A DNA stretch of 64,000 bases from contig JBLDXI010000046.1 in assembly GCA_047495785.1 (NCBI GenBank), forward strand, positions 806,001 to 870,000. Reading direction: 5' to 3'. The stretch's first letter is position 1. Each line of letters begins with the position of its first letter. The notes below the pieces were generated by a model. It saw nothing but the letters and a program-made list of their open reading frames with translations. It was not told the DNA's origin and did no database searches. The DNA comes from Lepidodermella squamata. Its lineage: Eukaryota > Animalia > Gastrotricha. The translations under genes were made by a program, and so were the position numbers. Shown here in pieces: positions 5,675-32,600 of the stretch.

Positions 5675-7852
5675 TCACATCAAATCGTACAGAAATATTG
5701 ACGACGTTTTAGGCATAGGTTCCACGTTGAAATCTTCAAAATACGGCTCATAGCCATTTCGAACCCAGTGCACGAATCGCCGAGTTGGTACCAGGGTCAA
5801 ATGCGAAGCTGATTCCGCGAACCCACTGCGCGTTATTATCAAATAATCCATTTTCGTCAGTAAATACCAATCGACAAACGTTTTAGCCGCTTCATACCAC
5901 ATTTTTTCGTTGTTTTCAAGTTCTGCCAGCCGATTTTTGTGCGTCAGATCAAAATTATCGATATGTCGAGTTGTTAGATTGAAGCCGTGATCGGTGTTGA
6001 ATATTTTCACATTTGGCAGCTTGCCAAGTTCGGCACTCACGTTGCGCCACGCCACGTCCCAATCGGTGGTCACAAAAATTGTAACGCTAACGTTTGAACC
6101 GATAACTTGGTTAATGACCCGTGTCGTTTCGTCAACGTAATATTTGAAATGATTAGGCTGGATTCTTTCGCTTGTATTTTCGACACCTAAAAAATGAGGC
6201 AAACAATTTGCGATTGGAAAAGATTGATTTGTGAAATAATTGAAGCTTTGAAAATTTTGAACTTGGAAATTTAAATTGCCTGATCTATGCTGAAAGTGTC
6301 CCTGAGCTACTACGACAGCACCTCAACCTCGTTCGCTGTCGATAGCCGACTCGTTTCGCCTCGCCCCTTCGGCCGCACAATTGACCGACCCGAACTCGGC
6401 CCCGTGCTACGTCACCTGGACCTCGGCGAGCCCCTACCCCTGCCTAGCCGCTTTCGGCCGTTCCGGCCCGCCTGGCACGAACGACTCGAAGGACGAAGCC
6501 GGAGTATTCTACACTCCGCTGGAACTCGCTTAAAGCTGGACCTCGAACTTTAGGGTGTTCATATGGGAAACCCTTGAAATGCCGCAAGAAGATGAAATTA
6601 AAAACTCACGTTCTGTTCGAAGTTGAAGTCCAATTTTCACAGAATTCACCCATTGCTGCCGGCCAACAGTTCGATCGACAATTTCGACCAGCAATTGCTT
6701 CAATTTGTCATTCGGCCTCGCCAGCAGAGCTCTCAACGCGCCGGAAATCGCGAGTTTGTAGTCACCCAAAATCCGACCATCCAATTCGAAAATAGCCGGG
6801 ACATTTTTGAACAAATTTTTGAAAAATGCCTTATTATTCAATACGGAATCGATGCCGGTAAATCGATTGGACATGACCAGCAAATTCGCGTCATTCGCGT
6901 ATTTTTCAGTGAAATTCAAATTCCCAAGCTCGGCCTCGAATAATTGGTCCTTGATATCGCCGCGATGTAGGAACCACACAGCTTTCGCCTTCGATTTTAA
7001 CAGATTTTCGTAGTAATCGAACTCTTTGATTTTATAAAATTTCGCGTTGACTTCGAAATAATCCGAAATGTCAGATGGCATAACCCAGTCGAAGTGGAAA
7101 AGGCGATTTGTAGCCATAGCTAAGTAAAACGCCAAAACTGAGCCTCGCAGCCGGTCGCCGAATCCGAAGCATTTGTGCCGTTTCACCCAGCAGTTTGAGT
7201 TCAATTCTCGGAGAACGAAAAACAGCTTGTCGTAGCATTCTATTGTTGGAAATCGACAAGTGGCCGAGACAAATTTCAGCTTCTAAAAAGTTATTAAAAA
7301 AATTCAGCTAAAGGATTTTTGAAATTTTAAATTCAAATTTCATTTCAAAAATTGAAGTTCAAATATTTGAAAAATTTAAATTTCATTTCATTTAAATAAT
7401 AATAAATAATAAATAATAATAATATAGTAAAACAGAATTAACTACTTTTTGAAATTGAAATTTATTTTGAAAAAAATAGGAAAATAATTTTGAATTTTGA
7501 AAAACGAATCTTCAATTTTTTATCGATCAATTCAAGTTAAAAACCAATCTTGTACCTTATTTTTAGGAGGATTTCCGAAATAATTTGCTCGAATTTGATC
7601 GGCTATGAGTTGAGCTCGATTTTGCCTGCTTCTTGCCGCAACAGTTGCCAACTTCGAAATAGCTTCCCGAACCCTGGAATCCTGAGGTTCAGCTTCAAAA
7701 ATCGCCTGCCAATCATTTCGCCTGATTTGATACGACCAAAATTGCGGCGGTTTGTTGCTCGCACTATTATCCGGCTGATTTAGGGTAAAAATAACGCAAG
7801 TTAAGAAAAATGACAAAACAAAAATTTGAATAATTCTCTCGAATCGAATCAT
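5675..7852 (-). CDS. Type II membrane fucosyltransferase-like glycosyltransferase (GT-B, alpha-2/alpha-6 FucT superfamily), 3 exons: 7852-7556, 7282-6610, 6186-5675
   Basis: N-terminal TM IIQIFVLSFFLTCVIFTL. GFGDRLRG..AFYLA..TNR motif, motif I KIGLQLRT, motif II IFVTTD, motif III DWYLL...RSGF. GT-AG junctions keep the frame. Confidence 0.8.
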
Positions 7853-7972
7853 TTTTGTGGTAAAATAACGCGCGCCGTGAAAAGAAATGATGAATCGAGC
7901 CCGCACGTGCCAAGGTTTCTTCTAGAAAAAATACCTAATTTTCTTCATTTACGTTTTGATTCTCGATAAATA
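7853..7972. promoter_or_regulatory. Putative bidirectional promoter between FucT-like and GT6 genes
   Basis: Only 120 bp between the divergent ATGs at 7852 (-) and 7973 (+); promoter activity is inferred. Confidence 0.55.
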
Positions 7973-9483
7973 ATGGTCGTCTATAATATTAATTGGAGAA
8001 ATTTGGCCATTGTCGTTTTGGGATTTTTCTCGTCCCTAACGCTGTTTTTACTTGCAATTAGCCATCAATCTGGTGGGGACATTTTCCCAAGGTCGAGTCG
8101 ATTTTCGCCTGCCGAACCGCAGGAATTACCGCCGGTCGAGAAAATCGCACCTGACCTTATTCATGTTGGCATTTTTCTAACAGCCCTTGGGCAATACGTT
8201 AATTACACGAAAGGCTTCGTTGAAACGGCGAGAAAATTCTTCCTGGCCGATTTCCGCGATCGTTACAAGGTGCATTACTTCGTATTTACCGATCACCCTG
8301 AGCAAGCTGTTGAAAGTATCGATGGGGATGTGGTTCTGACTAGGCAGAAAAGGTTCGGCTGGCCGGGCGATTCGATGCTTCGAACAGAGCTTTACCTGAA
8401 TGCGACGGCGAAAAAGAAAAGGGTTGGTAATTGGTAATTCTAAAAAATGACCTAGATTCGGACATTAAAAAAGTAGTCTCCCAAATTTTGAAGAAGGACC
8501 TTGAATAGCTTTGAAAATTTGAAAATTTAATTTTTCAACTTATATCTCAAAATTTCAAAAATGACCTAGTTTTGGACATGACAAAAAATTCTTCAAATGC
8601 ATCAAATTCCAAATTTTCAAATCGAAATTTATCATTTTTTAATATTTTTGAAATTTGAAAATGTATCGAAAAATTAAAAGTGACCTAGATTTGGACATCA
8701 ATGTTGTTGTCTCCCCGATCTTGAAAAATCGTCTTAAATTTCAAAATCAAATTTTTCTAAATTTTCAAATTTTTTTAAAATTAATTCAAAATCCGTCGAA
8801 ATTAGAACGCTTAATTTTAAAAATTAAAAAATTTCAGTTTAAATAATTTCCAGGTCAAATGTTGCGACTATGCGTTTTCTTTCGATATTGACGTAATTTT
8901 CGCCGGCCACGTTGGCCCGGAAATTCTCGGCGAACTCGTTGCTATTCAACACAATGGATTTGTCGAGAAGCACAACCGATCAACGTACCCTTACGAATCG
9001 AGCCTGACGTCATCTTGCGCCTACGTAGCGCCAGATGAGGGCTATGAGTATTTCACCGGGGCTGTTTACGGCGGCCGGTGGGACCACGTCGAGGCGCTGT
9101 GGCGGTGGATGGCTGGGTGTTCTCATCGCGATTTGGACGAAGGCACGTGGCCGATTTGGCACGATGAGAGCTACCTGAATCGGTATTTGATCGACCACCC
9201 GCCGACGGTTATTCTCAGCCCGTCTTACTACTGCGGCGAAAGTAATTATCCAGCTATTACTATCAGTTAAAGGGGTACCGATTTGGTACTCAAACATTGA
9301 GGTTCCAGCCAATAAAATATAATTGTTTGATCTTTTAATTTTTTTAAATTTGAACCCAAACAATTTATCAAAATTTTTATCAACTTTTATCATTATCAAT
9401 TTTCAGATAACTGTGTGTGGCCATACGACCGGAAAATAATTTGCCTGGACAAGGACTATGGAACGATAAGAAATGACCCATGA
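7973..9483 (+). CDS. GT6 family (ABO/alpha-1,3-Gal/GalNAc transferase-like) glycosyltransferase, 3 exons: 7973-8422, 8854-~9301, ~9408-9483
   Basis: TM anchor LAIVVLGFFSSLTLFLLAI. Motifs VGIFLTALGQY, VHYFVFTD, WPGDSMLR, DXD (FDIDVIF), YFTGAVYGG, WHDESYLNRY, ILSPSYY and C-terminal KIICLDKDYGTIR. Confidence 0.9.
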
Positions 9484-10399
9484 AAGAACACTCGGTGATG
9501 ACTATGTTTGGATATTTCATGGTTTCTCTTTTTCGAGCACCTGTTTTGACTGCTTGATATACAAATAAATTGAAAAATGAAAGAACTTATTTTTTTTCAT
9601 CATTCATAAAAAGGTCGCCTCAATGATGCGTGCGCCGTGCTTTTTTCCGGTGAAGTTTTAACCCGATTGGAGCCTGTGAGAATTCATGAACAAACATGAA
9701 CGAGGAGAAATAAAATCGTAGAATAACAATCGATATCGTATCATTTCATTCATAATTATTAGAGCGTATTTTTAACCTCGAATTGTAACAAACACCCATT
9801 TTTTACCGCTCGATCAGCCTTTTTGAGAAGTATTTTTAATTTTTAATTTTAGAATCATCTAAACAGCTAATAAGCTAGCTGGTGATGAAATTTGATGATA
9901 TCAAATCTATTTTTGTAACTGAACTTTCTTCTTGCAGATCTTATGTGATTGAATCGTAACTTTAATCCTATAGTTTTCGAAATCGGGCTTGCACCCCAAG
10001 ATCGGCCAGCCGAGCCTGCTCCAAAGTCCAGATACTTTCAAACTCAAGGACTTTTAACTACCTTAAACCAACTGGCAGAAAAACAGGTCGCTGGCACGTG
10101 CCAACAAAATCGGATCTTCGCGTGCGGTAAATAAGCTGGCACGTGCGTGAGCGACTAAAATTTGGTTCGGGCCGTGCTTGCTAAAAATCTTCATTCACAG
10201 CCTGGTCAAGTCAGACGATTGATGTTCGCCATTTCGAATCAATGTCAATATGTTCTAGCACAAAATCAATTTGTGCAAAACGTTATCGAGCTATTCAAAA
10301 TTCTGCATCATTAATCGAACGCAAACTGTGCTATTATTTCATCGAATAGTTTGAAATTTGAATTATTCGATTTTTGGCCTCCAAGAAAATGATGAATCT

Positions 10400-11266
10400 T
10401 AGATTGTATCTTTCCTTGAAGTAGTCTGCACAAGGCTCGTAGTGTGCCCGTTTTTCTTTGTCAACTTCCAGGGCTTGATCTGGGCTTTTTTCGAAGCGGA
10501 TGGTAGGGTCCACGATCCACCCTTCTCTCGTGTTTTTATTGAAGGCGATAATGTCGACCCTTTTGAGGCCGTCATTTTCTGCGAGGCAGGAAACTTCCTC
10601 GTAGACTTCGAGGGTCTTGTTCTTACGCAAGGAGTCTGCGATCATAGTTCGCACTCTATGACGGCGGGCGTTGCGAAGCAGAGCACCGCGATGGCAGAAA
10701 CCAAGGACATGTGAGAGGGATTCATACTCGCAGTCACAGTGGCGACAGCGGGGTGCGGGGTCCATCAAGGGGCTCCTTCCAGGCAGTGCACGAACCGGTG
10801 TCCGTCGTCATTTTGATCGCCGTAGTCCATTCGTTGACTGAGAGACCGGACTTGTTACTGATCCACTTATTACAGGCTGGCATTTCTCGGTACAGGTGGG
10901 CACCCCGGCCCTTATTGCTTTCAGCCCATTCGTTGAACGATCTTTCTCGCAAGATCGCGCGCAGTTGTTGTCCCACTTGCTTCCGATTACTCGTCGATGG
11001 CGAGTGAGGCTAGGCAGCTCTTCATTTCTGCCTCGAAATCTTTGCAGATACTGAGGTGAGGGTGGTTGAGCCTGGCAAGTTTCATTGAGATGCAGAAGTG
11101 TTGTATAAAACATTCCCAACTTCATTAGCCCAAGACCACGCCAGCTGCGGCTCGCATACAGGTACGCGTTGGGTGTGTCTCTCGGCAGCTCCAGTGTTTG
11201 CTTGACACGAGTTGCGCACGAGGCCGTCGACATCGTTCAAGAACGAGGCTGGTAGCTTGTATCTTT
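10400..11266 (-). mobile_element. Degenerate fragment of an R2-superfamily (REL endonuclease) non-LTR retrotransposon
   Basis: Post-RT LELPRDTPNAYLYAS..GLGL, CCHC finger CRHCDCEYESLSHVLGFC, REL nuclease RVDIIAF...WIVDPTIRFE...EKRAHY. Frameshifted; absent from the second duplication unit. Confidence 0.8.
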
Positions 11267-11397
11267 ATTATTTAGAATTCAAGATTTTGATAAACTATAG
11301 CCTATTCAAGCTTTAACGCATTTGTCATCGTGCTCTAAACTTGGCATTTGAACTATGTCATTGCTGAATTAAACATGTTATGTCCTATTGTGTAGTA

Positions 11398-14300
11398 ATG
11401 TTATTTTTTGCTCTAATTGCATTCGCATGTGCCGCCTCCTGTTCAGCAGATGAAGCAGCGGAGGAACCCGATATAAATGAGGTATGCTGATGACTTCGAA
11501 CTACGAATTTACTCTTTTCTTGTTTCCTTAAAAGATCAGGAACTTTATAAACCAAGCACGGCTGAAGGGATTAGCAAAATCCTATGCTGAGGTTTGTTCA
11601 CTTCGTATTCTCAAGTTGGCTGTTGCTTGACACCCCAATGCTATTTTCCAGAGCGATGTAGATGAAACTTCCCCGGAACTTATGACATCTGGCACTGTTA
11701 CAAAATGGACTCTACCCATACGCTTTTACCTCACGGCGAAATTGGGTACTTTTTTTGAAGCTTTTCCAGCATTTTCTGTAGTAGGCTATTTCATTGCGTA
11801 GAAAGGGACGCTGTTGCCAAGGCGAATGTACTTGCCGCTATCAAAATGTGGTCTGATCCGACTTGCGTCTCGTTCGAACAAGTGTTCACGCCTCCACTAA
11901 CGGGCAATGCGTTGACTTTCACTCGAGGCACAACGTAATACAGGAAATTTCATTAATCATATTTCGAAGGTTTTGATTTGTTCTTTTAGTGGTGAATGCT
12001 GGTCACAGATTGGCATGGTTGAAGATTACGCTCAAATGGTTCTTATCACAAATGAGTGTGCACATGTTAGCTAAACTCTGGACGATTAACGTATAAGAGA
12101 ACTACTGTTTTCCAACAGGATGTCGGACTTATAGCTCATGAGATTGGTCACGCTCTTGGCTTTGTAATTGCTCATACCTTCAGCTTACACGTTTCTAAAC
12201 TTTTCTCCCACAGCCTGACGAGCACCAGCGAGGCGACCGCGATAACTTCGTCAAGATCATCTCGGAAAGAATTATACCGTAACAGCGTACATGGTTAAAT
12301 TTATCATAAAATGTATTCAAATTTCAGAGGCCGCGCAGCCGCCAGTTTCGCCATCTCACCGGATGATAAGAGGAGCGATACAACTTACGACTTTGGCTCT
12401 GTGATGCATCCGCCCTTATCCTATCTGAGCGATGATGGTTCCCGTACTATCGAACCTATCGATAAGCACTACTTGGCCACTGTCACAGCTAATAAGACGC
12501 TGACCTACATCGACATTTACCGTGTACTTATGCTGTACTGTCCAAGTAAGCCAACTAACACTATATTCTAAGATAGGAGCAATAAGGGACATTTGAAGTT
12601 TAAACAACAAGAAAATGATGCATTAGGATGGGTTTCTTTAACAAAATTTCATAGCTACATTTAAGGTACCTGTTTAGCACGGGGGAACCCCCTTCCCAGC
12701 TTGCGAGCAGGTGGAGCAACGGAATAGCACAATTCGACCTTCAGATTATTGCAGGCAAGATCCAACCAGAGAATTGTTGTTTTTTTCCTAGACGCGTGTC
12801 AATCGAGCAGTGTGAAATGCGAGCTAGGTGTATTTGATCCTAAGAACTGCGACCGTTGTAGGTGCACTGAGGGCGCAACTGGCGTAACGTGTGAAGATGG
12901 GATATTTGATAGTCCTGCTGCTTGCGGTCCAACTTACATCACGGCTACCGGGTGCGAAACAAGTTACATCAATATTCCAGGCAACATTCCGGCTGGGACG
13001 ATTTGTTACTACTGGGCGTCAGTAACTAAAGTAAGGATAATATTTTTAGCCTACCAATAGTTTATCATGCCCTTATAACCATGATAAATTTTTCACCATT
13101 CGATAGATCTCGTGTCCGGTAAACTTTGCTGAAATTCTCGTTAGAATCGGAATTTTCGATTAGAATCGTTAGAATTCGGTGTTTTTGCCAAATCGCATGC
13201 AGCATTTTCACCACCAGTTTATCTGCTCGGATCCGATTCTAACGAGAATTACAGCTAAGTTAACCGCAGACCAGATCTATCGAATGGTGAAACCCGCTTC
13301 AAAAAAATCCTCATGGTTATTGTCCGCACTTTATTTCCAGCTATGATCTAAAGAACGCGTTCATCACAATCACTATTTTAGGTGGAAGGCGGCTTAGTGT
13401 TGAGCTTCGAATCGATTCCAATGCAAACCGAATCTGGAACTGATGAGGAATGCACCGGTGGTTCGTTCAATCATTTATTTGGCGTAATTTTTTACAGTCC
13501 GTTTTTTTAATTAAGATGAGTCATGTGACAATGGCGATTTCATCGAATTCCATTACAGCATAAGCCCGAAACTATTCACCACGGGCCCAAGGTAGGGCAA
13601 AGTTGATTTTTCGCATGAATTTTAACAAATCGCCGCAGAGCTTGCCGTTGCGGAGTAACAGCAGGCCGATTTTTCAAGGAAGATATTGGTGTCGCTCTGG
13701 TGAGGCTGGTTAAAAAAACCTCAGATACGTGGAAACCGTTCAGAATCGCCGTCTTTCCAACTTGTGGTGGTGTGAGTGCCAACGCGCTCAGCGAGGAGTG
13801 CTCCTTCGTCCCGAATAACTACGACTACATTGGCAAGAATAACCGCCTTCCTACCGGGGGCAAATGCGATTTATGGACCAATCAAAACTACTCACCGAAC
13901 GACTTCCCAGAAGCATCAATCGAGGCCGTCTCGAATTATTGCCGCAATCCTCGAGCAGAAAAGGCCGCGGCATTTTGTCCGCAATCAGGGACCCTAGATT
14001 CATGTCGAGATGTAGCCGTGTGCAGTAAGCTGGAATGATGCCATCTTTCAATACTACACGATGACTTTGTTTACATGTATAGCCGCTTACACTCGATGTG
14101 TTCCTGCTGACGACTCGATCGGGTACTGCGAGCTGCCAGGCCAATGCGCAATCAACGATCCGAAAGTTGAGGTAAAGAAATCCACCAGTCTCTGTGTAGC
14201 GAATTTAGAACCCAATGTTAACCCTTTCATGGCGGAATTAGTTATAAGCGGGAGAAACAATATTTGACAGCAATTCGAGATTTTGAAATCCGATTGTCGA

Positions 14301-15473
14301 ATTTCGAATCAAAATTTCAATCTCAGGTTGACTATTTTCAAATTGCTAGTATGTCCCGAACAAGAAAGATAACGCTGTCCTAATAGTCTCAAAACCTCGT
14401 AGCCAACATCGAAAAGCAATTTTCCTTAAATGGGCGAAAATTGAATTCGTCAAATTCAATTTTCTGCGAATTTTTAAAGTCGAAATTCCGAAATCGTCTT
14501 TCACGCCGTGAAAGGGTTAATAGCTTTTTGACAACGATGATATGCGGGGTGACTACAACTCCAGGGTGTCTAAAAGAAGGCATATCTCTCCGCACTGGAA
14601 ATTCGGTGAAAACGGATAAATAATCAATGTCTCGGCGGCTTGGTGATGGATGACCTGTTATGCGGGACTGTCACCAAACTGCACGAATTTTCACCTGTGA
14701 CCTAACGGTATACATTTCTAGCTAGATCTCATCACGCTGATGAACTTTTTCTTTGAGAGCGGCTTCGTAGCTATCACGGCTCTCGAGATAACCGCTCAGG
14801 TGTGACGCCAGGTTAGGTCACGTGACAAACTTGACACTGGAATTTCACCATAACTGTATATGATAAAATTATGGGGTTTTCGAATTTTCGCTCCCAAATG
14901 TTATCTCTATCGAAATAATGCGTGTCGATAGGGAAAGAAAAATAGACGATTTTTCTCGAAATTACCTATTTTTCTAATTGCTTAGCTGCAGCCGTTCGCT
15001 CCTACCCAAACCAGACTGATTTATCCGAGCCGCAATGACTGCTTCGCTGGTGTGAGTCATTTGACTTCGTTTTCACTCGAATTCTTGATGGCCTATTGTT
15101 TTAAGGGGGCTAAATGCTGCTACTCGAAATCAACTGGCGCATATGCTTACGGTGTTGTCGAGCGAGGCTGTGCCGATGGCTTCGCGACACTGATGACTTA
15201 CTCGAGCAATACTAATTTCTTCATCAACTACCAGTATGTCATCAGAACCTGCAAAGATGGGGTGCGATTTGAATCTATAGCAATTTCAAGCTATATGTAT
15301 TAAAATGTTGATAATAGGTGGCTTTGGAGCGTTGCCGCGATTCATCAAACAGCCTCAAAACATGCGCCCTAGAATCCCAGCCTTGTCCAGATGGCCTGGT
15401 GAAGCAGTCTAATAAAGTCATCTTTCCATCTTTTGCTACCTGCGTCGATCCCGCCATAGAGCACCCGAATTAA
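11398..15473 (+). CDS. Astacin-like metalloprotease A1 (SP-astacin-EGF-CUB-kringle-Cys-rich C-terminal domain), multi-exon
   Basis: SP MLFFALIAFACAASCSA. KWTLPIRFY, MWSDPTCVSFEQ, CWSQIG, HEIGHALGF|PDEHQRGDRD, YDFGSVMHP, EGF CELGVFDPKNCDRCRC, CUB-like exons, kringle NYCRNP. Stop TAA 15471-15473. Confidence 0.85.
13075..13320. mobile_element. Foldback/MITE-like insertion in an A1 intron
   Basis: Long imperfect inverted repeat (ataaccatga/tcatggttat, tttcaccattcgatagatct/agatctatcgaatggtgaaa, aattctcgttagaatcgga/tccgattctaacgagaatt). Absent from the paralogous A2 intron. Confidence 0.75.
14222..14516. mobile_element. piggyBac-like non-autonomous element (TTAA TSD)
   Basis: TTAA|CCCTTTCA...TGAAAGGG|TTAA. 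The paralogous A2 site ('aatgttaatagct', ~23420) has a single TTAA, i.e. an empty site. One more terminus of the same family lies at ~16251-16295. Confidence 0.85.
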
Positions 15474-16020
15474 ACCGAGCCGTGGGAAAGCTCGTGTGGT
15501 TGAGCCCATTTTCGGTGGCATGAACTAATTTTGGACAAAAGAATATTATATTATGCAAGCGTCTGTGTAATCAAATACGTCAAAAATCTATTATATTGCT
15601 GCTAAAATCGAACAATAAAATCGATATCAAATAAAAACCAGTGTTCAATTTCTCAAAATTTTGAAGTAAAATTTGAAACAAGAAAACTGGCGAATATATA
15701 TCATATGACCTGAAACAATAAGTGAAAACAATAGCTCACAAACGAATTCCTTTTTTCCTCGTCGGTATGTAATTTTTTTTTCTCGGTCAAGTCGTCGAAG
15801 AAACCCTTGACGCTCTCCCAAACATCGATAATTATATCGACTTGGCTAAGCCGTCAAGCTGAATGTGTGACCTATAAATTAAGCTTTAAGGCAAAAAATG
15901 CCCTGATGCTTGCCAGCAATTAGGTCAAATATTATGACTAATGCCCGCATTTGGCCCAGAAAACATGAACGGCTTTAGCAGCCAATTATCGGCCTCTTTA
16001 GAGTAATAAATAAATGTGAT

Positions 16021-16097
16021 GGCAACATGGTGCAGTTGCTATTAAACCGGCCAGTTCAACAGGCGGACGAGGTTCGAGCCCCGTCAAAGTTGGCCAT
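16021..16097 (+). other. tRNA-derived (SINE-like) sequence
   Basis: B-box GGTTCGAGCCC, GGCAAC/GTTGGCC acceptor-like pairing, followed by a T run; no clean cloverleaf. Confidence 0.35.
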
Positions 16098-16329
16098 TTT
16101 TTTCAGTGGCCTCTTTGATCAGATATTACATACGAGGAAAAAAGAAATCAGCTTGTGAGCTGGTATGCGATTTCTTTCTGCAAAAAACTTATTGCTTATT
16201 ACCAAAAAAATTACGTCACGAGTATTTGCGCACTCCTTAAGAAATGCGCGTTAACCCTTTCACGGCGGGAAGGACGATTTCGGAATTCGGAATAAATCGA
16301 CCTTCTTATTTAAGTGAACAAGTGAACAC

Positions 16330-16921
16330 ACAATCTTGTTGCGATTTGTCGAAAATACAGAACAGTTTTCACATGGTAAGCCGAGTTTGTAGTCGCCCAA
16401 AATCCGCCACGTTAATGTACACATTTTCGAAGAAGGCCTTGTTTTTTTCAAATGGAATACAGACTGGTAAACCGATTAGACATGAACAGTAAAAATTAGC
16501 GGCATAGTGAAATTTGATTTCCCAAGCTCGAAAAAATTGTCCTTGATATTGCCGCCATGCAGTATCCACATCAATTTCGCCCGAGACTTGGCCACATTTT
16601 AGTTTTAATTGATTTCGTTAACTTTTTGTTTTAAATTTCGCATTCACGCGGCAATACTTTGAGATAGCAGCCAGTCAAAAACCGAAGATTCGATTTTTGG
16701 CCATGGCAAGGTGAAGAGCCTTGCAAACGGTCCCCAAAATTTCGAAACGAAATGATATCGATCGGTTGGATAAAAAATAGTTCTTTTTCGCACGCTTGAT
16801 GATGTTTACCTGTTGTTTCCAGGCTAAAATAATATGCAATCTGCGACACGAGTAAAAAGAAGTAAACAAACCGTGAGGCGCGTGAGGCTAATAATAATAT
16901 TAATAAAATCGATCGAGCGCA
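16330..16921 (-). pseudogene. Fucosyltransferase-like pseudogene remnant 1
   Basis: FGDRLQGS and KNKAFFENV match FGDRLRGS and NNKAFFKNL of the 5675-7852 gene. TM-like N-terminus; frameshifts. Confidence 0.6.
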
Positions 16922-17844
16922 AAGTCTTCGCTTTTATACTATATTACCCGCTCGGACTTTACTTGGCTTTTATTAGGCCGCACTTTCCGCGCAAAAAAGC
17001 TTCTGAATTACAAGCATTTTTCTACAATTTTACAGAATTTTTCCAAAAAATTTTCCTGATTTTCAGCGAAAATTCAATTTTTATATAATATTCATCGTGC
17101 ATTTAACGGCATTCGTATATCATTATTTGTTGACCGCCGTGTACTTACCCTGTTAAACACTATTTGATGGTGCCAACACGTGTATATCAGCACGAAGAAG
17201 CATATACTATTACTACAACGAAGCTTTGTGTGCAATTATACAAGCTGGAATTTTTATAATAATGACGTTTCACAGTTTTGAAAAACCACTCGCGAGACTG
17301 TATTAGGCCTATATTTCAGCATATTAACAACGCTGAAAATTGCATTGTCATCATTGCCATCTTCCAGATCCGCTGGAATTATTGTTCTCAATATTTTTCC
17401 GGGTAATAACGGGGTTAAATTAGGAAATTATAGGTTAATAAAACGGTTTTTCCAGTCATTTTTGTGTTGATTATTTTATTTTATTTTGCGAAATATCGCC
17501 GGCAAATTATAGTGCTGAGTACTTCTTTTCGGTTCATTTATCAGTTGTATTAGGAATACTCATATAAACAGGATAGGATACGTACCGCATAGCCATATTT
17601 ATACATAGGAATCTTAAGACGAGCAAAAGCTATATATTAGGACTAAGGCTGTATATTTTTTAAATTTGAAAATTTATATAAAAATGACCTCGATTTGGAC
17701 ATCAATATTGTTGTCTCCCCGATCTTAAAAAATCGTCTTAAATTTAAATTTTTTTAAAATTTATCAAAATTAATTCAAAATCCGTCGAAATTAGAACGCG
17801 TTATTTTTAACAATTTCTAATTTCTAATTTTAAATAATTTCCAG

Positions 17845-18477
17845 GTCAAATGTTGCGACTATGCGTTTTCTTTCGATGTGGACGTCATTTTCGCCGGGCA
17901 AGTTGGCCCGGAAATTCTCGGCGAGCTCGTCGCTATTCAACACAACGGATTTGTCGAGAAGCATAACCGATCAACGTACCCTTACGAATCGAGCCTGACG
18001 TCATCTTGCGCCTACGTAGCGCCAGATGAGGGCTATGAGTATTTCACCGGGGCTGTTTACGGCGGCCGGTGGGACCACGTCGAGGCGCTGTGGCGGTGGA
18101 TGGCCAGGTGTTCGCATCGCGATTTGGACGAAGGCACGTGGCCGATTTGGCACGATGAGAGCTATCTGAATCGGTATTTGATCGACCATCCGCCGACGGT
18201 TATTCTCAGCCCATCCTACTACTGCGGCGAAAGTAATTACATCGAGCTTTTATTATCAGAAAAAGGGTTCCAAGTTGGTACTCCAACATTGAGGTTCCAG
18301 GGCAAACTTTTCCTAAAATAAGATTTTTTAGCTTCGGATCCTATACAATGGAAATATGTATATAGAATGTTGGACTTTATTTTTTTTGTCATTTTCGCAG
18401 ATAACTGTGTATGGCCTTACGACCGGAAAATAATTTGCCTGGACAAGGACTACGGAACGATACGAAATGACCCATGA
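17845..18477 (+). pseudogene. Duplicated GT6 exons 2-3 lacking exon 1 (orphan 3' half, ORF and splice sites intact)
   Basis: Near-identical to 8854-9483 (DVD instead of DID, WHDESYLNRY, KIICLDKDYGTIRNDP*). The duplication breakpoint lies in intron 1. Confidence 0.75.
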
Positions 18478-20050
18478 AAGAACAATCGTTGCTAACTATT
18501 TTTCATGGTTTCTCTTTGAGAGCACCTGTTTTGACTGCTTGATGTTAAAATAAATTAAAAAATAAAAGAAAAAATGGATTTTTTTCCTCATTCATAAAAG
18601 GGCGCCTCATTGATGCGAGCGATGTTTTTCCTCGAAATTAGTGGAAATAATGATTGAAATTCGCACCGTGATTTTTCACCAGTAAAGTTTTAACCTGATT
18701 TGAACCTTTGTTGGAAAAATCAGCGAATTCATGAACAAACACGAGGAAAAATAAAATCATAGAAAAATGATCGATTTCTTATAATTTCATTCATAATTAT
18801 AAAAGCGTATTTTTTCACCTCGAATTGTATCAAACTTCCATTTTTTAGCACGCGATCAGCCTTGAGCAGTATTTTTAACTTTCAATTTTAGCAGCATCAT
18901 GTCGTAGCGTTCGACATTTCATCCATAAGACGCGACACGACTATCAGCCGGTGATTTATGATATAAAATCTATTTTTGTACCTAACCTTTCTTCTTGCAC
19001 ACGCTGTTCTCGACTTGTGTATAGCTTCAAGAATCTTACCACGAAACTTGACCAAGGCCTCATATGTTCAATAATCTACCCCTTCATTTCCATCGCCCAA
19101 TTCGCCCAATCAATATTACTTACCCTACTTCAATCCTGCCCCCGATGCCATTTTTACCCCTGAACCCTGACCCTGAACTCCTTAACCTGAACCCTTTAAC
19201 CTGGACCCTTTTATCTGAACCCTATGAATCAGGAGTAAATTATGTTGTAGTAATTTCGTCTGAAACCGAATCAGACTGAACGGACTTGAAGAATTATCGG
19301 CTAACTTTTGACCCCATGAAATATTCCAGAAAAAACTAAGATCTTCTGCGATTGAATCATAACTTTAATCCTAGAGTTTTGGACCCCAAGATCGACCAGC
19401 CGAGCATCTAGCCTGGTCCAAAGTCCAGAAACTTTCATGCTCAAGGACTTAACTCTCTTAAACCATCATGTCAACAAGTAGCTGCCAGAAAAATAGGTCG
19501 CTGCCACGCGCCAACAAAACCGCCTCTTCGCGTGCGGTAAATAAGCCGTAAATAAGCTGGCACGTGCGATGAGCAAATCAAATTGGGTGCTCACTGAAAA
19601 TCTTCATTCACAACCTGGTCAAGTAACGATTAATATGTTCGCGAATCAATGTCAGGGTTCTAGCACAAAAATGTGATCGAGCTATTCAAAAGTCTGCATC
19701 ATTTATCACACGCGATGGTTTCAAGTTGAAAAAGTAGAGGCTATATCCAAGATTACCCGAACTTACCCACTAGCTCGAGGATTCCACTTCCCAATTTCAT
19801 AAGACTTGAGGAAAATACTAAAGACCACACCATAGAGAGCATTCCCTGTGGAGAAGACTTTCATCCATTGAAATGTGCAGCCTTAAAGCCCTGCTCTTCT
19901 GAATCCTTGTAATTGTAAGCGCAACGCCATTGGATGCAAATCGAAACGCAAGTCTTTAAAATTGTAGCTTTGACGCAATTGTCATCGTGCTCTAAACTTG
20001 GGACATCGTCATTGCCGAATGAAACATTTTTATGTTCTATTGCTGTAGTA

Positions 20051-23000
20051 ATGATATTCTTTGCTATAATTGCATTCACATGTGCTGCCTCCTGTTCAGC
20101 AGATGAAGCAGTGGAGGAACTCAATATTAATGAGGTATGTTGATGAATTTCAACTATGAGTTAAATTTAATCTTGTTTCCTTAAAAGATCAGGAACTTCA
20201 TAAACCAAGCACGGCTAAAGGGTTTAGCAAAATCTAATGCCGAAGTTTGTTCTCTGCGTTTTCTCAAGTTGGATTTTGCTTGACACCAGAATGCTATTTT
20301 CTAGAGCGATGTAGATGAAACGTCCCCGGAACTTATGACATCTGGCACTGTTACAAAATGGACTCTACCTATACGCTTTTACTTCACAGCGAAATTGGGC
20401 AATTTTTGAAGCTATTTCTGCATACTCAGTAATAGTAATTTGCGTTTGTAGAAGCAGATGCTGATGTCAAGGCGAATGTACTAGCCGCCATCAAAATGTG
20501 GTCTGATCCAACTTGCGTCTCGTTCGAACAAGTGTTTACGCCTCCCGAAACGGGCAATGCTTTGACTTTCACTCGAGGCACATCGTATGAAAGAAAAATG
20601 CATTAACCATAGCAGATTTCGAAGGTTTTTATGTCTGCTATATAGTGGCGAATGCTGGTCAAAGATTGGCATGGTTGAAGATTACGCTCAAATGGTTCTT
20701 ATCACAAATGCGTGTGCATATGTTAGCTAAACTCTGGGCCACTAACGTATGAGAGAACTACTGTTTTCTAACAGGATGTCGGACTTATAGCTCATGAGAT
20801 TGGTCATGCTCTCGGCTTTGTAATATCTTATACCTTCTGCTTGTACGCTTTTCAACTTTTCTTCCACAGCCTGACGAACACCGGCGAGGCGACCGCGATA
20901 ACTTTGTGAAGATCAACTGGGAAAACGTTCAACAGTATAACACCGTAAATGGTGCAATTTATAGGAAAATATATTATTCTCATTTCAGAAGCCGCGCTGC
21001 AAGTTTTGACATCTCGCCAGATGATAAGAGGAGCGATACAACTTACGACTTTGGCTCTATGATGCATCCGCCCTTATCCTATCTGAGCAGAGATGGTTCC
21101 CGTACTATCGAACCTATCGATAAGCACTACTTGTCCACTGTCACAGCTAATAAGACGCTGAGCTACATCGACGTTTACCGCGTGCTTTCGCTGTATTGTC
21201 CAAGTAAGCCAACTAATAACCTACTAACATTATATTACAAGATGCAGTACCGATGGGGGTAATAAAGGACATATGGAGCTAAAAACAAGTTGAAAATTGA
21301 AGGTTAGATTTCCAATGGGAGAAAGGTGAACCGATACCGCCGAGGCCAGTCTATGATGACCTCTATAAGTGGATAGCGCCTGAGAAAATTTAGGTAAGTG
21401 GTGGGGAAACCTTGGCTAAATGCGGTTGAAAGGACGGAAACAAAAAATGAATCATTTTCATGGTGGATTATGACTGTTTACAAGGCAGCGTTAGGAACAG
21501 GTCCGGTCGACCGTTCCCGGTCCGTTCCCGTTCTAGGTCCGGTATCGGTCTCAAAAACGCCATCGGTAGACTGGGAAAAGTTCAAGTTTAAACTTAGCAG
21601 GGTGGGCGTGGAAAAATGGAAAAATCAGATTTTGTTGTTTTCGTGATTTTCCTGACTGTCAGCATTAGTGCGGCAGTCAAAAGTATCGAATGCGGTTGGG
21701 CTGGTTCATGACCTCCTAACATTTTACTGAGTCTTAGAAGCCTCCCTACATCCCTACTAGAAGCCTTGATCATATTTTTAGGCGAGTTGGGAAATTTTAT
21801 GCGTTTGGTGTCATGTTTTCTCTATTTTCATGCGATTTAAAAATGGCAGTTCTAAAACCGGAGTTCCCGTCCCGGTCCAGTTTGACTTCCATCGTTCGCA
21901 GGTTAGGTATATATCGATCTGCAAAACCTTACCCGTTTCCAACACTGTTTCAAGGCTCCTTTTGAATATAAATCATCCTTGGATTAGAAGAAAAGTTATT
22001 GGATCTAAGGCACCTTTAAGGTAATGGGGTATCCCCTGCCTCTGAAAAGCCGAAACCAAGACTGAGGGGACCGACATTTTTAGGCCGAAAATAACTGTAA
22101 GTACCACCCAGCCGGAGGACCCTAATTTGCACGCTGCCGGTTACTGGGTTTTTAGCAGCAAGTAAATTGAAAGCTAGGATAGCTTCAAGATGGCCAAACT
22201 AGGAAATATTTTCTTAATATTAGTAGGATCCGGGTTTCAGATTGTTGCAAGCTAGACCCAACCAGAAAAGCACGCTTTGGTTTCCGCTGTTGATTTTTCT
22301 TATAGACGCGTGTCCATCGAGCGGCGTCAGATGCCAACTGGGCGTATTCGATCCCAAGAACTGCAGCCGTTGTAGGTGCGTCGAGGGCGCAATTGGCGCA
22401 GCGTGTGACGACGGAATATATGATAGTCCTGCTGCATGTGGTCAAACTTATATCCAGGCTAGCCCGTGCGAAACAAGTTACATCAATATCCCAGGCAATA
22501 TTCCGGCTGGGACAACTTGTTTCTACTGGGCTGTAAAGGTTGTTTTCGGGCAATGATCTCATGAATAAGTTCATCAATTCACCTCGCACTTTTACAGGGT
22601 GAGGACGGCGGCTTCGTGCTCGGCTTCGATTCGATCCCAATGCAACCCGAATCTGAAGCTGATCCGGGCTGCAGCGATGGTTCGTTCAGTCATTTATTTT
22701 AAAGAATTTCTGCAGCGCGGTTTTATGAATTTAGATGAATCATGTGACAATGGCGATTACATCGAATTCCAATACAGCGTAAGCCCGAGAATATTCACCA
22801 CTGGACCAAGGTAGGAAATACTCGATTCATCGATAAATTTGAAACCTTTGTCGCAGAGCTTGCCGTTGCGGAGTAACAGCGGGACGTTTTTTTAAGGAAG
22901 ATTATATAAATGTCGCTCTGGTGAGACTGGTTAAGAAAACCGCGGATACGTGGAAACCGTTCAGAATCGCCGTCTTCCCAACATGCGGTGGCGTGAGTGT

Positions 23001-24392
23001 CAACGCGTTAAGCGAGGAATGCTCCTTCGTCCCGAATAACTACGACTACATTGGCAAAATGCACCAACTTGACTCGGGGGCTCCTTGCAATCCATGGACC
23101 AATCAAAATTACTCACCTAACGACTTCCCAGAAGCATCAATCGCAGCTGTCTCAAATTATTGCCGCAACCCTCGAGCAGATAAGGCCAGAGCATTTTGTC
23201 CGAGATCAGGTCAATTGATGTTTTGTGGACATGTAGACGAGTGCAGTAAGGCTGAATGGCATCTTTCAATGATACACGATGAATTTGATTCCATGTATAG
23301 CCGCTTATACTCGTTGTGTTCCTGCTGACGACTCAACTGGATACTGCGAGCTGCCAGGCCAATGTGCCATCAACGATCCGAAAGTCGAGGTAAAGAAATC
23401 CAGCAGTTTCTGTGCAGCGAATGTTAATAGCTATTTCGACAACCCTATGCAGGGTGACTACAACCCCAGGGTGTCTAAAAGAAGGCATATCTCCGCACAA
23501 GGGAAACTCGCGGTGAAAACGGATAAATAACCAGTGTCTCGGCGGCTTGGTGATGACCTGTTATACGGGACTGTCACCAAACTGCACTGAATCGAATTTG
23601 CACGAATTTACACCTGTGACCTAACGGAATACATTTCTAGTTAAATCTCATCGCGCTGATGAACTTATTCTTTGAGAGCGGCTTCCCAGCTATCACCGTT
23701 GTAGAGATAACCGCTCAGGTGTGACGCCAGGTTAGGTCACGTGACCAACTTTACACTGTAATTTCTCCGTAACCGTAAGTAATAAAAATATGGGGTTTTC
23801 GAATTCTCGCTCCCCATTTTTTCTCTATCGGTGTAGTGCGTGTCAATTTGTAGGTCATTTTCTCATAATTACCTGATTTTTTAATTGCTTATAGCTGCAG
23901 CCGTTCGCTCCTACCCAAACCAGATTGATTTATCCGAGCCGCGATGATTGTTTTGCTGGAGTGAGTCATTTTGACTTTGTTTTCTCGGAACCTATAATAT
24001 GGCTCATTCTTTTAAGGGGGCTAAATGCTGCTACTCGAAATCAACTGGCGCTTATGCTTACGGTGTTGTCGAGCGAAACTGTGCCAATGGCTTCGAGGCA
24101 ATGTTGTCTTACTCGAGTGATGAGAATTTCTTCGTCAACTACCAGTATATCATCAGAACCTGCAAAGATGGGGTGCGATTTAAGTACATGATATTTATTT
24201 GAATTTAATGAATTTATTTGATAGGTGGCTTTGGAGCGTTGCCGCGATTCGTCAAACAGCCTCAAAACATGCGCATTAGAATCTGAATCTTGTCCAGCTG
24301 GGCTGACGAAGCAGGCTAATAAAGTCATCTTTTCATCTTTTGCAATGTGCGTCGATCCCGCCGTAGAGCAGCCGCCTTACACCGAACCTTAG
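20051..24392 (+). CDS. Astacin-like metalloprotease A2 (long form), multi-exon
   Basis: Paralogue of A1: HEIGHALGF|PDEHRRGDRD, YDFGSMMHP, EGF, CUB, kringle NYCRNP, C-terminal Cys domain. Stop TAG 24390-24392. Confidence 0.8.
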
Positions 24393-24602
24393 AAAATCCT
24401 GTGGTCGAGGTCAATTTTCGACGGCATGAACTAATTTTGGACAAAAGAATATGATGGTCAATGTATTTATTTAAGTAAAAATATATTTTCGACTCGCGTG
24501 AAATTATATTTCTAAGCTCAAAATAAAAACTGGTCTTCAAAGTCTCAAAAAGCCAATTTTAATTTCGAGACTTTGGCCACATTTTCGTTGTAATCAATTT
24601 CG

Positions 24603-24905
24603 TTAATTTTTAAAAACTTTTGAGATATCTGCAGATATTTGAGACGATGGCAGCCTTTCAAAAGTCGAAGATTCAATTTGTGGCAAGGTAAAAAGCCATA
24701 GCAGAGCCTTGCAACCAGTCTTCAAAAATTTGAAACGAAATAAAATTGATTGCATTTTCGCACGCTTAATGATGTTTACCCGTTGTTTACCTGTTGTTCT
24801 TACGCTAAAATTAATATGCAATCTGCGACACGAGAAAAGAAGTAAACAAAGCACAAGGCACGTGAGGCTAATATTATTAATAAAATCGATCGAGCGCAAA
24901 GTCTT
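24603..24905 (-). pseudogene. Fucosyltransferase-like pseudogene remnant 2
   Basis: An alternative frame reads FEDWLQGSAMAFYLATN (cf. FGDRLRGSVLAFYLAMATN); hydrophobic N-terminus LTCLVLCLLLFSC. Confidence 0.6.
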
Positions 24906-25895
24906 CGCTTTTCTACTACATTGCCCACTTCAACTTGGCATGACTTATTAGGCCGCGTAAAAAAACTCCAGAATTACGTGCATTTTTCTACAATTTTGCA
25001 TAATTTGCTGCATTTTTTCCCGATTTTAAGCGAAAATTCTGTTTTTTGTTTAATCATTTTTTGTGCATTTAACGGCAGATTCGTGTATTATTTGTTGACC
25101 GGTGTGTACACTATTTGATGCTGGTGCCAACACGTGTATATCAGCACGAAGAAGCGTATACTATACTTGCATATACTATTACTACAACGAAGCTTGTGTG
25201 CAATTATACAAGCTGAAATTTTGTTGTAATGACGTTTCACAGTTTTGAAAAACCACTCGCGAGAAAGTATTACGCCTCTATTTTAGCATATTAACAACGC
25301 TGAAATTGCATTGTCATCATTGCCATCATCTTCAAAATCCACTGGAATTATTTTTCACATTTTACCGGGTAATAACAGCCTTAATTTAGGAAATTTAGAA
25401 CGGTTTCTCCAGCCATTTTTGCCTTGATTATTTGATTTTTTATATTTACAATAAAATTGCCGGCATATTATAGTCTTGATTACCTCTTTTTCGGTTCATT
25501 TATCAGTTGCATAGAAATACTCATATAAACAAGATAGGAAATGTACCGCAGCCTTACTTACACATATATAGAAATCATAAGAAGGGAAAGCTAAGACTAA
25601 GGACTAAGGCTGTATATGCGTGATTGTTATGATGCTGCTGTATTGTTGGGGTAAACAGCACTTCTGAAGGCATATTGGTATAATACCAGTCTTTATTGCT
25701 GCTCAGAAGCCGGCGTCTTTAGCGGCCTAATATCACCTATAGTAAATATTATTACCGAACACGCGCGTTAAATAGTATATTATTTTTGATCTTTTATTGT
25801 GTTGATGATGAATTATAAGCTGTACGGCCAAGTTTTATTACCAATTTATTTATATTTCCCGAAAATTAATAGAACCCAAACAACATTTGGCACCT

Positions 25896-29400: not shown

Positions 29401-29693
29401 TGCTTATAACTATAGGAGTCTATAATGATTCGAGAATCGAAATGATAAAAAAATTAGATAGGAATTATTTTATCAATCATCGTATTAAGATCGCGTGTAG
29501 AAAAATTGCGATTTTTTTCAATGGAAAACAATCAATGGCAAAAAGTCAAGATCAAGGCCAAAATAACTTTTATTCGCATGACAATAAGGTCACAATAATA
29601 ATGCGCAAATATTTGGATAATTAGCTATAATTATTCCGATATTTAAATCGAATAAATAATCTATATTATGATTAATAATGAAAGGTTTTGTTC

Positions 29694-32600
29694 TCAGGGC
29701 AGAATACATTTGGCGAAGGTGTCGTATGTAATTCCTTGAACAGGCAACTGTAAAAAAATTGAGAGAAATCAATCTTGAAATTAATAGGCAAAATAAGACG
29801 AAAATGAGTGCATACCAGGCCAGAGGGACATTGCTCAGTTGCGTTCACGCATGCTTTGATAGCATTCGCCTCATCAACGCAACGCGTTAGCGTGACCCCA
29901 TATCGGCAAATTTGTTGCACGTATTGAAAATTGACGAAAAAATTCTGATTAAAGTAGTAAGTCATCAACTGGAAAAAAATCGAAAATGTGAATCTCAATT
30001 TATTAAATTTTGACAAATAATTTTATCACCTCTTGGTAACCAGCAGCACATGGCCTTTCCGCGACGCCCCAAACATAGGTACCTGAGGCGGCGGCATAGC
30101 AGCATTTTGCCGCCTAATAATTTTCAGAACATCGAGCTATTATTTCGTACAACTTGGGCGAAGCAACGTACCCCAGTAAAGCAATCATCCCGGCTTGGAT
30201 ATCTCAAAGGGGCTTGCGTAGCTGGATCAAAAGGTTGAAGCTACAATAAATTACGCAAAATAAAAAAATTATTCAAAGCTTCAATCAAAACAAAGATGAC
30301 CGAATTTAAATTATTGTGGGACCAACTTAACCACCCACCGTCACCACCCAGGCCCAGAACCCGCCCCTTGGGGCCCAAGCGATCCCATTCCTTAAGAATT
30401 TTTCCCAGAATGAGTGGATGAGCAACTAGGATTTCGTGAGAAATCCCAGGTACCCCCCGACCCGTCTTGAAATTGCATTTCCCTTGAAACTTTCGTTTCA
30501 GCCAGCCGAGTGCCGGCGAGAAGGACAATCCTTCGAGCTTGCGATATGCCCACCGCCACAATTGCAGCAATGGGCAACACACAGGCAGAGGGCAGAGTTT
30601 CGCGTTGTGCTTTTCATTCAAATTAAAAAGTTTCGTAATTTTTAAATGGATTTCGCACCATTTCAATTTCTTCTGACGTAACGTACCACAGACATGCTTG
30701 GATCGCATTCACCAGGTCTGTTGCAGTAGCCTCGAGAGCCGTCTGATGGCAAGCATCTCACATACTCCACTAGATAATGGAGAAGAACGATGCAATCAGC
30801 AAGACGAACTCAAAATGGGACACTTACAGCAAGGGCGGATGCTGCATTCCCCAATTTCGCCGTTTGTCTCGAAGCAAAACGTCGCGTTTCTAAAGGCCCG
30901 AGGATTACGGCAATAGGCACCCGCCGCCGTGAGAGATCCCTCCGGAAATTCGTAGCCGCTTACAAGCGTCTGGTCAGTCCAATGTGCGCATCGAGCACCA
31001 GTTGCAGCTCGAATCACCGAACCCTCGTAGTCGTACTGCTTATCCGTGAAGTAACACTCTTTGTTCAACGTATTGCCAGGCTGGCCGTTGCACATGGCGT
31101 AGGCGGCGATTCTAAATGGTTCCCAGGTGTTGTTGGTTACTTTGACAAGTCTGACACCAGCACCTTCAGTCGTTGAAGTGAGCACTCGCCCGGCGCTGAT
31201 CGAGCAAGGGCATACCCTGGCGAATTAAAAACATAGATAAAAGAAATGGCGATGCTATTTTTTGCTAACCTAGTTCCAGATACGTAACCACGTGGCCAAG
31301 TGCCGTCGATGAATTCAAGATAATCCATGCCATCACACGATTCAGCTGTGCACAAAAAGATATGGCTTTAAACCTTCGTTGCATATTGCATATACTCTTG
31401 TGAGTTAATAAGATAACAGGAAGTAGGATCCTCGCGGGGAGGGGTGAGAGAGGGGGTAGTGGGGGGTAGTGGGGGTAGCAAAAGGTCCCACGCTTGGTAC
31501 CCAGCAGTATCGCAGTATCTGAAATTTGCCCGTGGGAATTACCCCTTCTTCCTAACATAATGGCAATGCTCCGCCTGAGCTTGTGATCTTTGGCCATTTC
31601 CTAAGCTCGCGAATGGTAACCCACTCAAAGGGTCTTTGATTTGCCGATTCCACGTCGAATTGCGCCAAATTCACCTTTCTATGGCTTTCGGACAAATTCC
31701 TTTACCTGTTACACTGCTGCAATCAACGCTGCCATTCATTGGAACGGTATCAAACGCAAGGACCATGCCGTTCGGTTGGTCCTATCAAAACTTCAAGTTC
31801 TCATACGAGTAATAAAATGAGATCACACTACCGTGAAAAAGAAGTAGGTGCATGTCGTTCCAGCCGGGATATTTGTAGGGATCGTTACGTACCCAGTAGT
31901 GCAAGGGCTGATCATAGTGAGCGTGGGGCCACACTTTGACTCATCGTGATAAACCGGTTGATCGCAAGCTGGCCCTGTTGCCACGTTGGCACAACGGCAT
32001 TGCTTGCAGTTGAGCGGGTTGTAAACTCCCCAGCCACAGAGCCAACCATCGCCAACGCCACAAATATCTGCAAATCAAAGTTGTCAATTTTGATAAACAC
32101 TTGCGATTACGCAGAGTTAACCCCGGGTCCAAAATGTCGGACCCAAACTCGACTCGGGCCCGACCCGACCCGGGGCCAACTCTGCGACTACGTACCTCTT
32201 AACATTTGCCGGCAATATAAAAAGTTGATGCGATTCACATCACTGTATGAAACATTTTCTCGTTGACCCATCGTGAACAGGTTGTGCTTGTCCCACGGTT
32301 CGATTGTACGACTCTTGTTGTCGGCGCTCAGGTATACCGAAGACGGGTGCATTATCGAACCGTAATCGTATGGGAAGCCCATTGAGTTGTCTTGGCTGAC
32401 AATGGCAAAGTCTTGTTGCCTCCAACTATGGACATAGCAAATTCAATCGATTTGACAGACAAACAAATTTTTGACTCACGGACTGATATTCCCTAGCATG
32501 ACCATGACAAAATCGTCTCGATCTTGGCGTTGATGTTCGTCAGGCTATAGAAAAATCATAATTACGAAAACTTCTCCCGGAATGGCACAGAACGCTCAAT

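Follow-up and report, generated by a model that had tools for sequence, protein, structure and literature searches.

Introduction

In the vertebrate ABO pathway, a fucosyltransferase of glycosyltransferase family 11 (GT11), either FUT1 or FUT2, is followed by an A or B transferase of family 6 (GT6). In 2014, one paper stated that no GT6 gene had been found among the invertebrates (PMC3961637), and another remarked that many invertebrate species are devoid of them (PMC5377540). GT6 enzymes take part in bacterial blood-group mimicry as well, as is the case for the B-transferase of the E. coli O86 O-antigen cluster, Bacteroides ovatus GT6a (BoGT6a) and the GT6 of Parachlamydia; the characterised bacterial members need a 2'-fucosyl acceptor, and BoGT6a is ~46 residues shorter than the mammalian domains (PMC3516806). 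A fucosyltransferase of a different family, Arabidopsis FUT1 (AtFUT1, a GT37 xyloglucan alpha-1,2-fucosyltransferase), fucosylates galactose with guanosine diphosphate (GDP)-fucose (PMC9201394). For molluscs, the parts of PMC8724618 and PMC11522050 consulted report A-type N-glycan termini and cloned alpha-1,2-fucosyltransferases; the oyster enzyme adding alpha-N-acetylgalactosamine (GalNAc) is not described in those parts, and the term 'N-acetylgalactosaminyltransferase' is absent from the text of PMC11522050. Here we describe a head-to-head pair formed by a GT6 gene and a fucosyltransferase-like (FucT-like) gene in the gastrotrich Lepidodermella squamata, contained in a stretch of 64,000 nt (contig JBLDXI010000046.1, positions 806,001 to 870,000 of the forward strand), designated the window, and we weigh the possibility that their products make a blood-group-like epitope.

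A divergent pair of intact glycosyltransferase genes

The FucT-like gene (minus strand, 7852-5675) and the GT6 gene (plus strand, 7973-9483) are arranged head-to-head, with a gap of exactly 120 bp from ATG to ATG. Both genes are intact and consist of three exons, the FucT-like gene coding for a predicted type II membrane protein of ~494 amino acids (aa). The four introns of the pair are of the GT..AG class with T-rich acceptors, and measure 273 and 423 bp in the FucT-like gene (donors GTACAA and GTGAGT, acceptor TTTTTAG in both) and 431 and 165 bp in the GT6 gene; AATAAA occurs downstream of the stop codon of each gene. At the N-terminus of both deduced products, a short charged tail precedes a single hydrophobic segment of 19 residues (Kyte-Doolittle means of 2.23 and 2.61; residues 7-25 in exon 1 of the FucT-like gene), which is the predicted signature of a type II signal anchor, as in Golgi glycosyltransferases. 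The layout described in the first-pass annotation of this DNA, with two intron-bearing genes for type II proteins whose starts lie 120 bp apart, is thus borne out, as is its designation of the plus-strand gene as an ABO-like GT6 (see below).

Genes in head-to-head orientation with starts less than 1 kb apart are candidates for bidirectional-promoter pairs, and the present pair falls within this distance. The 120-bp gap is the sole basis for the idea of a shared promoter. One of the five copies in the window of the palindrome GCACGTGC is situated inside the gap, at 7903-7910, the other four being at 10094, 10139, 19560 and 33452; 0.75 copies were expected by shuffling, and one of 100 shuffles reached five.

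The plus-strand gene codes for a compact, ABO-like GT6

All sequence searches for the two genes were done exon by exon, with single exons. Pfam model PF03414 (GT6) matched exon 2 with 96.5 bits (E value 1.7e-27) and exon 1 with 29.7 bits (3.7e-7), both over the cut-off of 25, and the profile match of exon 3 was 0.0059. Among solved structures in the PDB, exon 2 retrieved the chains of human ABO (6e-22), BoGT6a (5e-18) and bovine alpha-1,3-galactosyltransferase (6e-14). The best solved relative of exon 1 was BoGT6a (2.9e-7), residues 64-144 aligning with BoGT6a residues 2-82, and ABO aligned only partly; the alignment of exon 1 with BoGT6a and ABO also revealed that the vertebrate-type N-terminal extension of the catalytic domain is missing from the window GT6. 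The closest short proteins to exon 2 in the database were DXD-type bacterial GT6 of 225 aa, encoded in polysaccharide gene clusters, with 42-49% identity; since this search of short proteins excluded full-length animal GT6, the bacterial ranking says little about the origin of the gene. A word-index protein search gave no match with GT6 exon 1 or with FucT-like exon 2, blanks that carry no information given its length filter. A bacterial contaminant, or a fresh import from bacteria, is rejected on the grounds of the two spliceosomal introns, the membrane anchor and the duplicated paralogue of the GT6 gene.

In the alignment to human ABO, the D-I-D motif is situated at D211-V-D213, His-Asn-Gly at 233-235, Tyr at 264, Thr-Gly-Ala at 266-268 and W-H-D-E at 300-303. 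Additionally, K15 and R21 of exon 3 are invariant with bacterial GT6 (alignment A6). Because D-I-D, WHDE and the C-terminal Lys and Arg are kept, the enzyme looks catalytically complete and metal-dependent (DXD). Three determinants of the use of 2'-fucosyl acceptors have been described in GTA/GTB and BoGT6a, namely His122/233, Gly124/235 and a small residue three positions before a Lys (Ile228/Ala343, versus Trp356), alpha-3GalT having Gln or Trp at all three (PMC3516806). The window GT6 reads His, Gly and Cys at these positions, the pattern of the subgroup that uses 2'-fucosylated acceptors. The DXD-type GT6 of Parachlamydia uses H-antigen trisaccharide or 2'-fucosyllactose and is inactive on N-acetyllactosamine (PMC3516806). 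As to the donor, the motif TGA at 266-268 is listed among the dual A/B motifs in a published code table (PMC5377540), suggesting that it may be the uridine diphosphate (UDP) derivative of galactose (UDP-Gal), UDP-GalNAc or both.

The minus-strand gene belongs to a sparse family with a fucosyltransferase fold

Pfam searches returned no match on any of the three FucT-like exons, the models for GT37, GT11 and GT23 included, so that the gene could not be filed by sequence under any of these families. The GT37 model (PF03254) gave 12-14 bits with homologues, below its cut-off of 23.4, and no match with the window exons; the GT11 model (PF01531) matched neither the window exons nor the homologues, GT11 being returned as a single language-model lead (0.91). 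A PDB sequence search with exon 2 yielded chance matches only. An exhaustive HMMER search with exon 2 against 1.84 billion representatives identified just 29 relatives, the best at 8.6e-39 and the two best with 40% and 39% identity, and none of the 29 carries a name; the profile match of exon 3 was 1.6e-50.

The invariant columns of exon 2 (C38, G40, G42, D43, R44, G47, G218 and R222; alignment A1) are all kept in the window protein, as are 14 of 14 in exon 3 (alignment A5); in family alignment columns, R222 and D105, R119, S120 and E124 are present, candidates for the Arg that follows the first Rossmann half and for the C-terminal acidic/Ser motif of the GDP-fucose fucosyltransferase superfamily (GT11/23/37/65/68). 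The family motifs in these alignments read C-x-G-G-F-G-D-R-x-R-G, K-I-G-V-Q-I-R and D-W..L-T.M-D.L-I-S-R-S-G-F-G-E. The stem motif '..IRANYF' of the window protein matches the helix that precedes the domain in homologues (A1), and the splice phases are consistent with A1 and A5. The metagenomic contigs that contain relatives also carry genes of animal type (Cys-loop receptors, ANF receptor, trypsin, PDZ), and none of the contigs had a human appearance; distant relatives occur on other contigs, and the one examined (L018) looks eukaryotic, with a Cas1-type acyltransferase split over two open reading frames (ORFs).

The fold was examined on a model of the single-domain homologue P0005 (pLDDT, the model confidence score, 86), which is 27% and 39% identical to the window protein in exons 2 and 3, respectively. 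With this model, Foldseek retrieved AtFUT1 first (2.9e-12), followed by NodZ, FUT8 and POFUT1/2. A second structural aligner ranked AtFUT1 (Z 21.9) before FUT8 (19.9), NodZ (18.2) and the POFUT enzymes (~15.5), the 43 highest-ranking solved matches all being fucosyltransferases before Z dropped to 10 with the heptosyltransferases. Solved matches above Z 14 use GDP-fucose without exception, and an Atlas fold search returned clusters of FUT8, xyloglucan fucosyltransferases and NodZ. The GT-B variant fold of AtFUT1, by which GT37 is recognised, was found in this model, that is, in the homologue. Placement of the minus-strand gene in the GDP-fucose fucosyltransferase superfamily, with a predicted GT-B fold, is thus well supported at the level of the fold; the gene would represent a sparse, unnamed eukaryotic family whose modelled fold is closest to plant GT37.

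Two peculiarities of the FucT-like gene are worth recording. Exon 3 (5678-6184) lacks both cysteines kept by most relatives, 'CF.E' reading YYVDE and 'CPF' reading EPYF; their joint disappearance is what the loss of a single disulfide bridge would produce. Intron 2, otherwise A+T-rich, contains a G+C-rich stretch of ~270 bp (6287-6553) with no other copy in the window.

Association of the two families in relatives

On the environmental animal contig L002 (10001-11869), and identically on L003, the next gene after the FucT-like gene P0005 starts 133 bp further on, in the same orientation, and codes for a membrane-anchored type II protein of 222 aa. This neighbour resembles GT6 around the DXD strand, where it reads S-S-E, and it lacks WHDE; it is probably a degenerate (dead) GT6-like gene. 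Six long relatives of the FucT-like protein (P0002, P0003, P0006, P0007, P0009 and P0015; 645-802 aa) carry the fucosyltransferase domain at their C-terminal end. Their N-terminal 250-330 residues share the motif F-S-S-x-F-F-G-G-S and are co-linear with the GT6 profile (hhalign, P 8e-4), so that these proteins may be fusions of a degenerate GT6 domain with the fucosyltransferase. A phmmer search with the GT6 exons against all FucT-like relatives gave no match, and in the AlphaFold model of the 802-aa P0002 the N-terminal 330 residues had a pLDDT below 50.

A tandem duplication generated a second set of GT6 exons

Comparison of the window with itself revealed a tandem duplication of ~9 kb (8642-17656 versus 17653-25617) with roughly 80% identity, ranging from 75 to 86% among blocks, whose left breakpoint is situated inside intron 1 of the GT6 gene. 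In each unit, GT6 exons 2-3 are accompanied by an astacin/kringle gene of several exons in the same strand. Exon 1 is missing from the second GT6 copy, and the window contains no other exon-1-like ORF.

Between the coding sequences of the two copies there are 20 differences, 16-17 synonymous and 3-4 non-synonymous, for 99 synonymous versus 360 non-synonymous sites (ratio ~0.06); the changes include I>V in the DXD motif, H>Q and G>R. For intron 2, the identity between copies is as low as 78%. The low ratio, together with the divergence of intron 2, indicates that the second copy is kept under purifying selection, as deduced from the substitution pattern. The simplest explanation within the window is that the single exon 1 (7973-8422) may be spliced to one or the other pair of 3' exons. 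Apart from the divergent pair, the two families are represented in the window only by this copy (17845-18477) and by a remnant of FucT-like exon 2 (16311-16734); the remnant points to an older copy of the FucT-like gene, situated downstream of the astacin gene.

ORFs at 10334-11233, in the first unit, look by eye like the remnant of a long interspersed nuclear element and have no Pfam match.

A possible fucosylate-then-cap pathway and its alternatives

We tentatively favour, with somewhat less than even confidence, a sequential pathway in which both genes would be driven from the shared 120-bp gap. A terminal galactose would first be fucosylated by the FucT-like enzyme; the GT6, which most likely adds alpha-1,3 galactose or GalNAc, would then cap the fucosylated galactose, giving an A/B-like terminal epitope. 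What we infer is the sharing of a promoter, the sequence in which the enzymes act, the linkage of the fucose and the final product; the catalytic and donor-binding residues of the enzymes are retained. This is the pathway of the first-pass annotation, and the enzyme kinds, the 2'-fucose determinants of the GT6 and the position of AtFUT1 as best fold match agree with it, the fucosylation of galactose by AtFUT1 fitting the idea. The 120-bp gap, the gene neighbours of L002/L003 and the co-linearity of the N-terminal regions of the long relatives with the GT6 profile also speak for it. The fucosyltransferase label of the annotation stands for the superfamily, through the fold of the family, and goes no further, since there is no Pfam match.

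Several observations weigh against the pathway. In the GT6, two acceptor contacts differ from human ABO: the position of Thr245 is Pro, and that of Asp326 is Gly (followed by Glu) in an alignment of exons 2 and 3 made by eye. Residue Asp326 of human ABO is an acceptor contact. For the other position, the equivalent residue Thr134 is an acceptor contact in BoGT6a (PMC3516806). On the fucosyltransferase side, the alpha-1,6-linking enzymes FUT8 and NodZ trail AtFUT1 by no more than about 2 Z units, too small a difference to fix the fucose linkage, and the window exons match neither the GT37 nor the GT11 model of Pfam. Unrelated genes, too, can have short head-to-head gaps. The pairing itself, which the first-pass annotation had proposed as a candidate module, recurs in relatives once at best, and weakly, in L002/L003: the L002 neighbour obtains 23.6 bits with an independent GT6 profile, and Atlas gives no GT6 lead for it. 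No GT6 is found within reach on contigs L005-L008 or at 14 metagenome loci (L011-L024), and for the N-terminal domain of the long relatives the hhalign probability of homology to GT6 is only 24%. Conservation of the pairing is therefore patchy.

A somewhat less likely explanation is that both enzymes are active but on different glycans, being neighbours through local expansion of the families or because short divergent gaps are tolerated, with any fucosylated acceptor needed by the GT6 supplied by another fucosyltransferase. Most related contigs lack the pairing, which speaks for this explanation; duplications and transposons make the region a patchwork able to juxtapose genes, and the fold of the FucT-like family does not give the linkage. 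However, a gap of 120 bp is unusually tight for a repeat-rich, gene-poor window, and L002/L003 show a second association of the two families, with possible fusions in the longer relatives.

It is distinctly unlikely, in our view, that GDP-fucose is not the donor of the FucT-like protein, or that this enzyme fucosylates protein or a sugar other than galactose, as POFUT and FUT8 do, so that no H-like intermediate would be made. The occurrence of POFUT1/2, FUT8 and NodZ among the fold matches at Z 15-20 is in line with this, and so are the nucleotide-loop motif GFGDR and the fact that no curated family model fits; nevertheless, GDP-fucose is the donor of all solved matches above Z 14, and the top one, AtFUT1, acts on galactose. 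That one gene of the pair is recently dead or non-catalytic, leaving no two-step pathway at the locus, is highly improbable, because, despite the presence in the vicinity of decayed copies (a FucT-like remnant, 16311-16734, and a GT6 copy that lacks exon 1) and the two cysteines missing from the FucT-like protein, neither reading frame is interrupted, the splice sites are canonical, polyadenylation signals are present, and the family-invariant and catalytic residues are all kept.

A more ambitious extension of the fucosylate-then-cap pathway appears rather unlikely to us. It would have an invertebrate lineage build its own blood-group-like route from components that differ from those of vertebrates, namely a plant-like (GT37-like) fucosyltransferase and a compact, bacterial-looking DXD GT6, with the two families coupled repeatedly (head-to-head, in tandem and as fusions) and GT6 exon 1 provided with two alternative, duplicated sets of 3' exons.

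Should the fucosylate-then-cap pathway be true, the locus would represent a second enzyme combination for A/B/H-like termini in animals, it would name a candidate enzyme type for the A-like glycans of other invertebrates, and it would offer a compact two-gene unit for studying the rise of glycan 'identity' epitopes. If the enzymes are functionally unrelated, what remains is a commonplace pair of divergent genes from two families that have expanded.

Coordinates of the locus and other features of the window

Table 1. Exons, intergenic gap and additional copies of the FucT-like and GT6 genes (coordinates in the window)
Feature	Coordinates	Strand	Description
FucT-like exon 1	7556..7852	-	start codon 7852-7850, tail MIRFER, transmembrane anchor, stem; 99 codons
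FucT-like exon 2	6610..7282	-	N-terminal Rossmann half; family-invariant C-x-G-x-G-D-R-x-x-G loop and Arg of 'QLR'
FucT-like exon 3	5675..6186	-	C-terminal half, DW..LT.MD.LI..RSGF.E.A motif; stop codon 5677-5675
Region between start codons	7853..7972	.	candidate shared bidirectional promoter (putative function); holds palindrome GCACGTGC at 7903-7910
GT6 exon 1	7973..8422	+	tail, transmembrane anchor, short stem, compact N-terminal half of catalytic domain
GT6 exon 2	8854..9241	+	DXD (D-I-D), His-Asn-Gly acceptor loop, Thr-Gly-Ala donor motif, WHDE catalytic motif
GT6 exon 3	9407..9483	+	C-terminal lid, conserved Lys and Arg (..CLDKDYGTIRN..); stop codon 9481-9483
Second copy of GT6 exons 2-3	17845..18477 (17845-18232, 18401-18477)	+	97.7% and 100% identity (tblastn)
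Decayed, frame-shifted remnant of FucT-like exon 2	16311..16734	-	31% aa identity in two frames (tblastn); 67% nucleotide identity, 6808-7051 versus 16416-16647

The rest of the window is rich in repeats. A region of Ty3/gypsy type (52575-58938), corresponding to a long terminal repeat retrotransposon, contains an open pol frame of 1230 codons (protease, reverse transcriptase, RNase H and integrase) together with gag and zinc-knuckle ORFs, and its G+C content is 55-59% versus ~40% elsewhere. Near-identical repeats of 178-190 bp occur at 49948-50137/59299-59486 and at 53691-53868/59017-59194, and a MULE transposase domain (1.8e-10) is encoded by an ORF at 59477-60202. Another tandem duplication, of ~4 kb, spans 29451-37642 (29451-33564 versus 33655-37642, ~75-80% identity), with ORFs that have no Pfam match. 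The stretch at 11309-12558, in which the astacin exon is situated, is 68-83% identical to copies near 39.5-40.8, 48.1-49.9 and 61.6-63.1 kb, which constitute either a dispersed gene family or a repeat. One tRNA gene (Rfam RF00005, 69.8 bits) is located at 47515-47587 in the minus strand.

Comparison with known systems

Mollusc A/H glycans resemble the present case in coming from non-vertebrate animals, and differ in that the glycans themselves were seen there, whereas only genes are seen here. AtFUT1 is the best structural match of the FucT-like family (Z 21.9 over 302 residues, rmsd, the root-mean-square deviation, 3.6, with the P0005 model), and it is a type II Golgi enzyme that fucosylates galactose; nevertheless, identity is only 12-14%, and the model covers AtFUT1 residues 170-553 only.

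The systems of bacterial mimicry share with this locus the compact GT6 domain and the presence of adjoining glycosyltransferase genes, and exon 2 of the window GT6 has the identity to 225-aa DXD-type members given above. In contrast to them, the window GT6 is a spliced animal gene with an anchor and a stem, and forms part of a divergent pair instead of an operon; no relative of the FucT-like family adjoins the bacterial GT6 genes on L009/L010.

As in the vertebrate ABO pathway, a fucosyltransferase is found together with a type II, DXD-type GT6, which keeps the equivalents of His233, Gly235, Tyr264, Trp300, Glu303, Lys346 and Arg352. The differences concern both enzymes: the fucosyltransferase belongs to an unnamed GT37-like family and not to GT11, and the GT6, with Pro and Gly at the positions of Thr245 and Asp326, lacks the N-terminal extension of ~46 residues, its first half being nearest to the bacterial BoGT6a. 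Vertebrate fucosyltransferase and ABO genes sit on different chromosomes. What is new here is the partnership of a GT6 with a GT37-like, instead of a GT11, fucosyltransferase, in an invertebrate and in the layout of a divergent gene pair.

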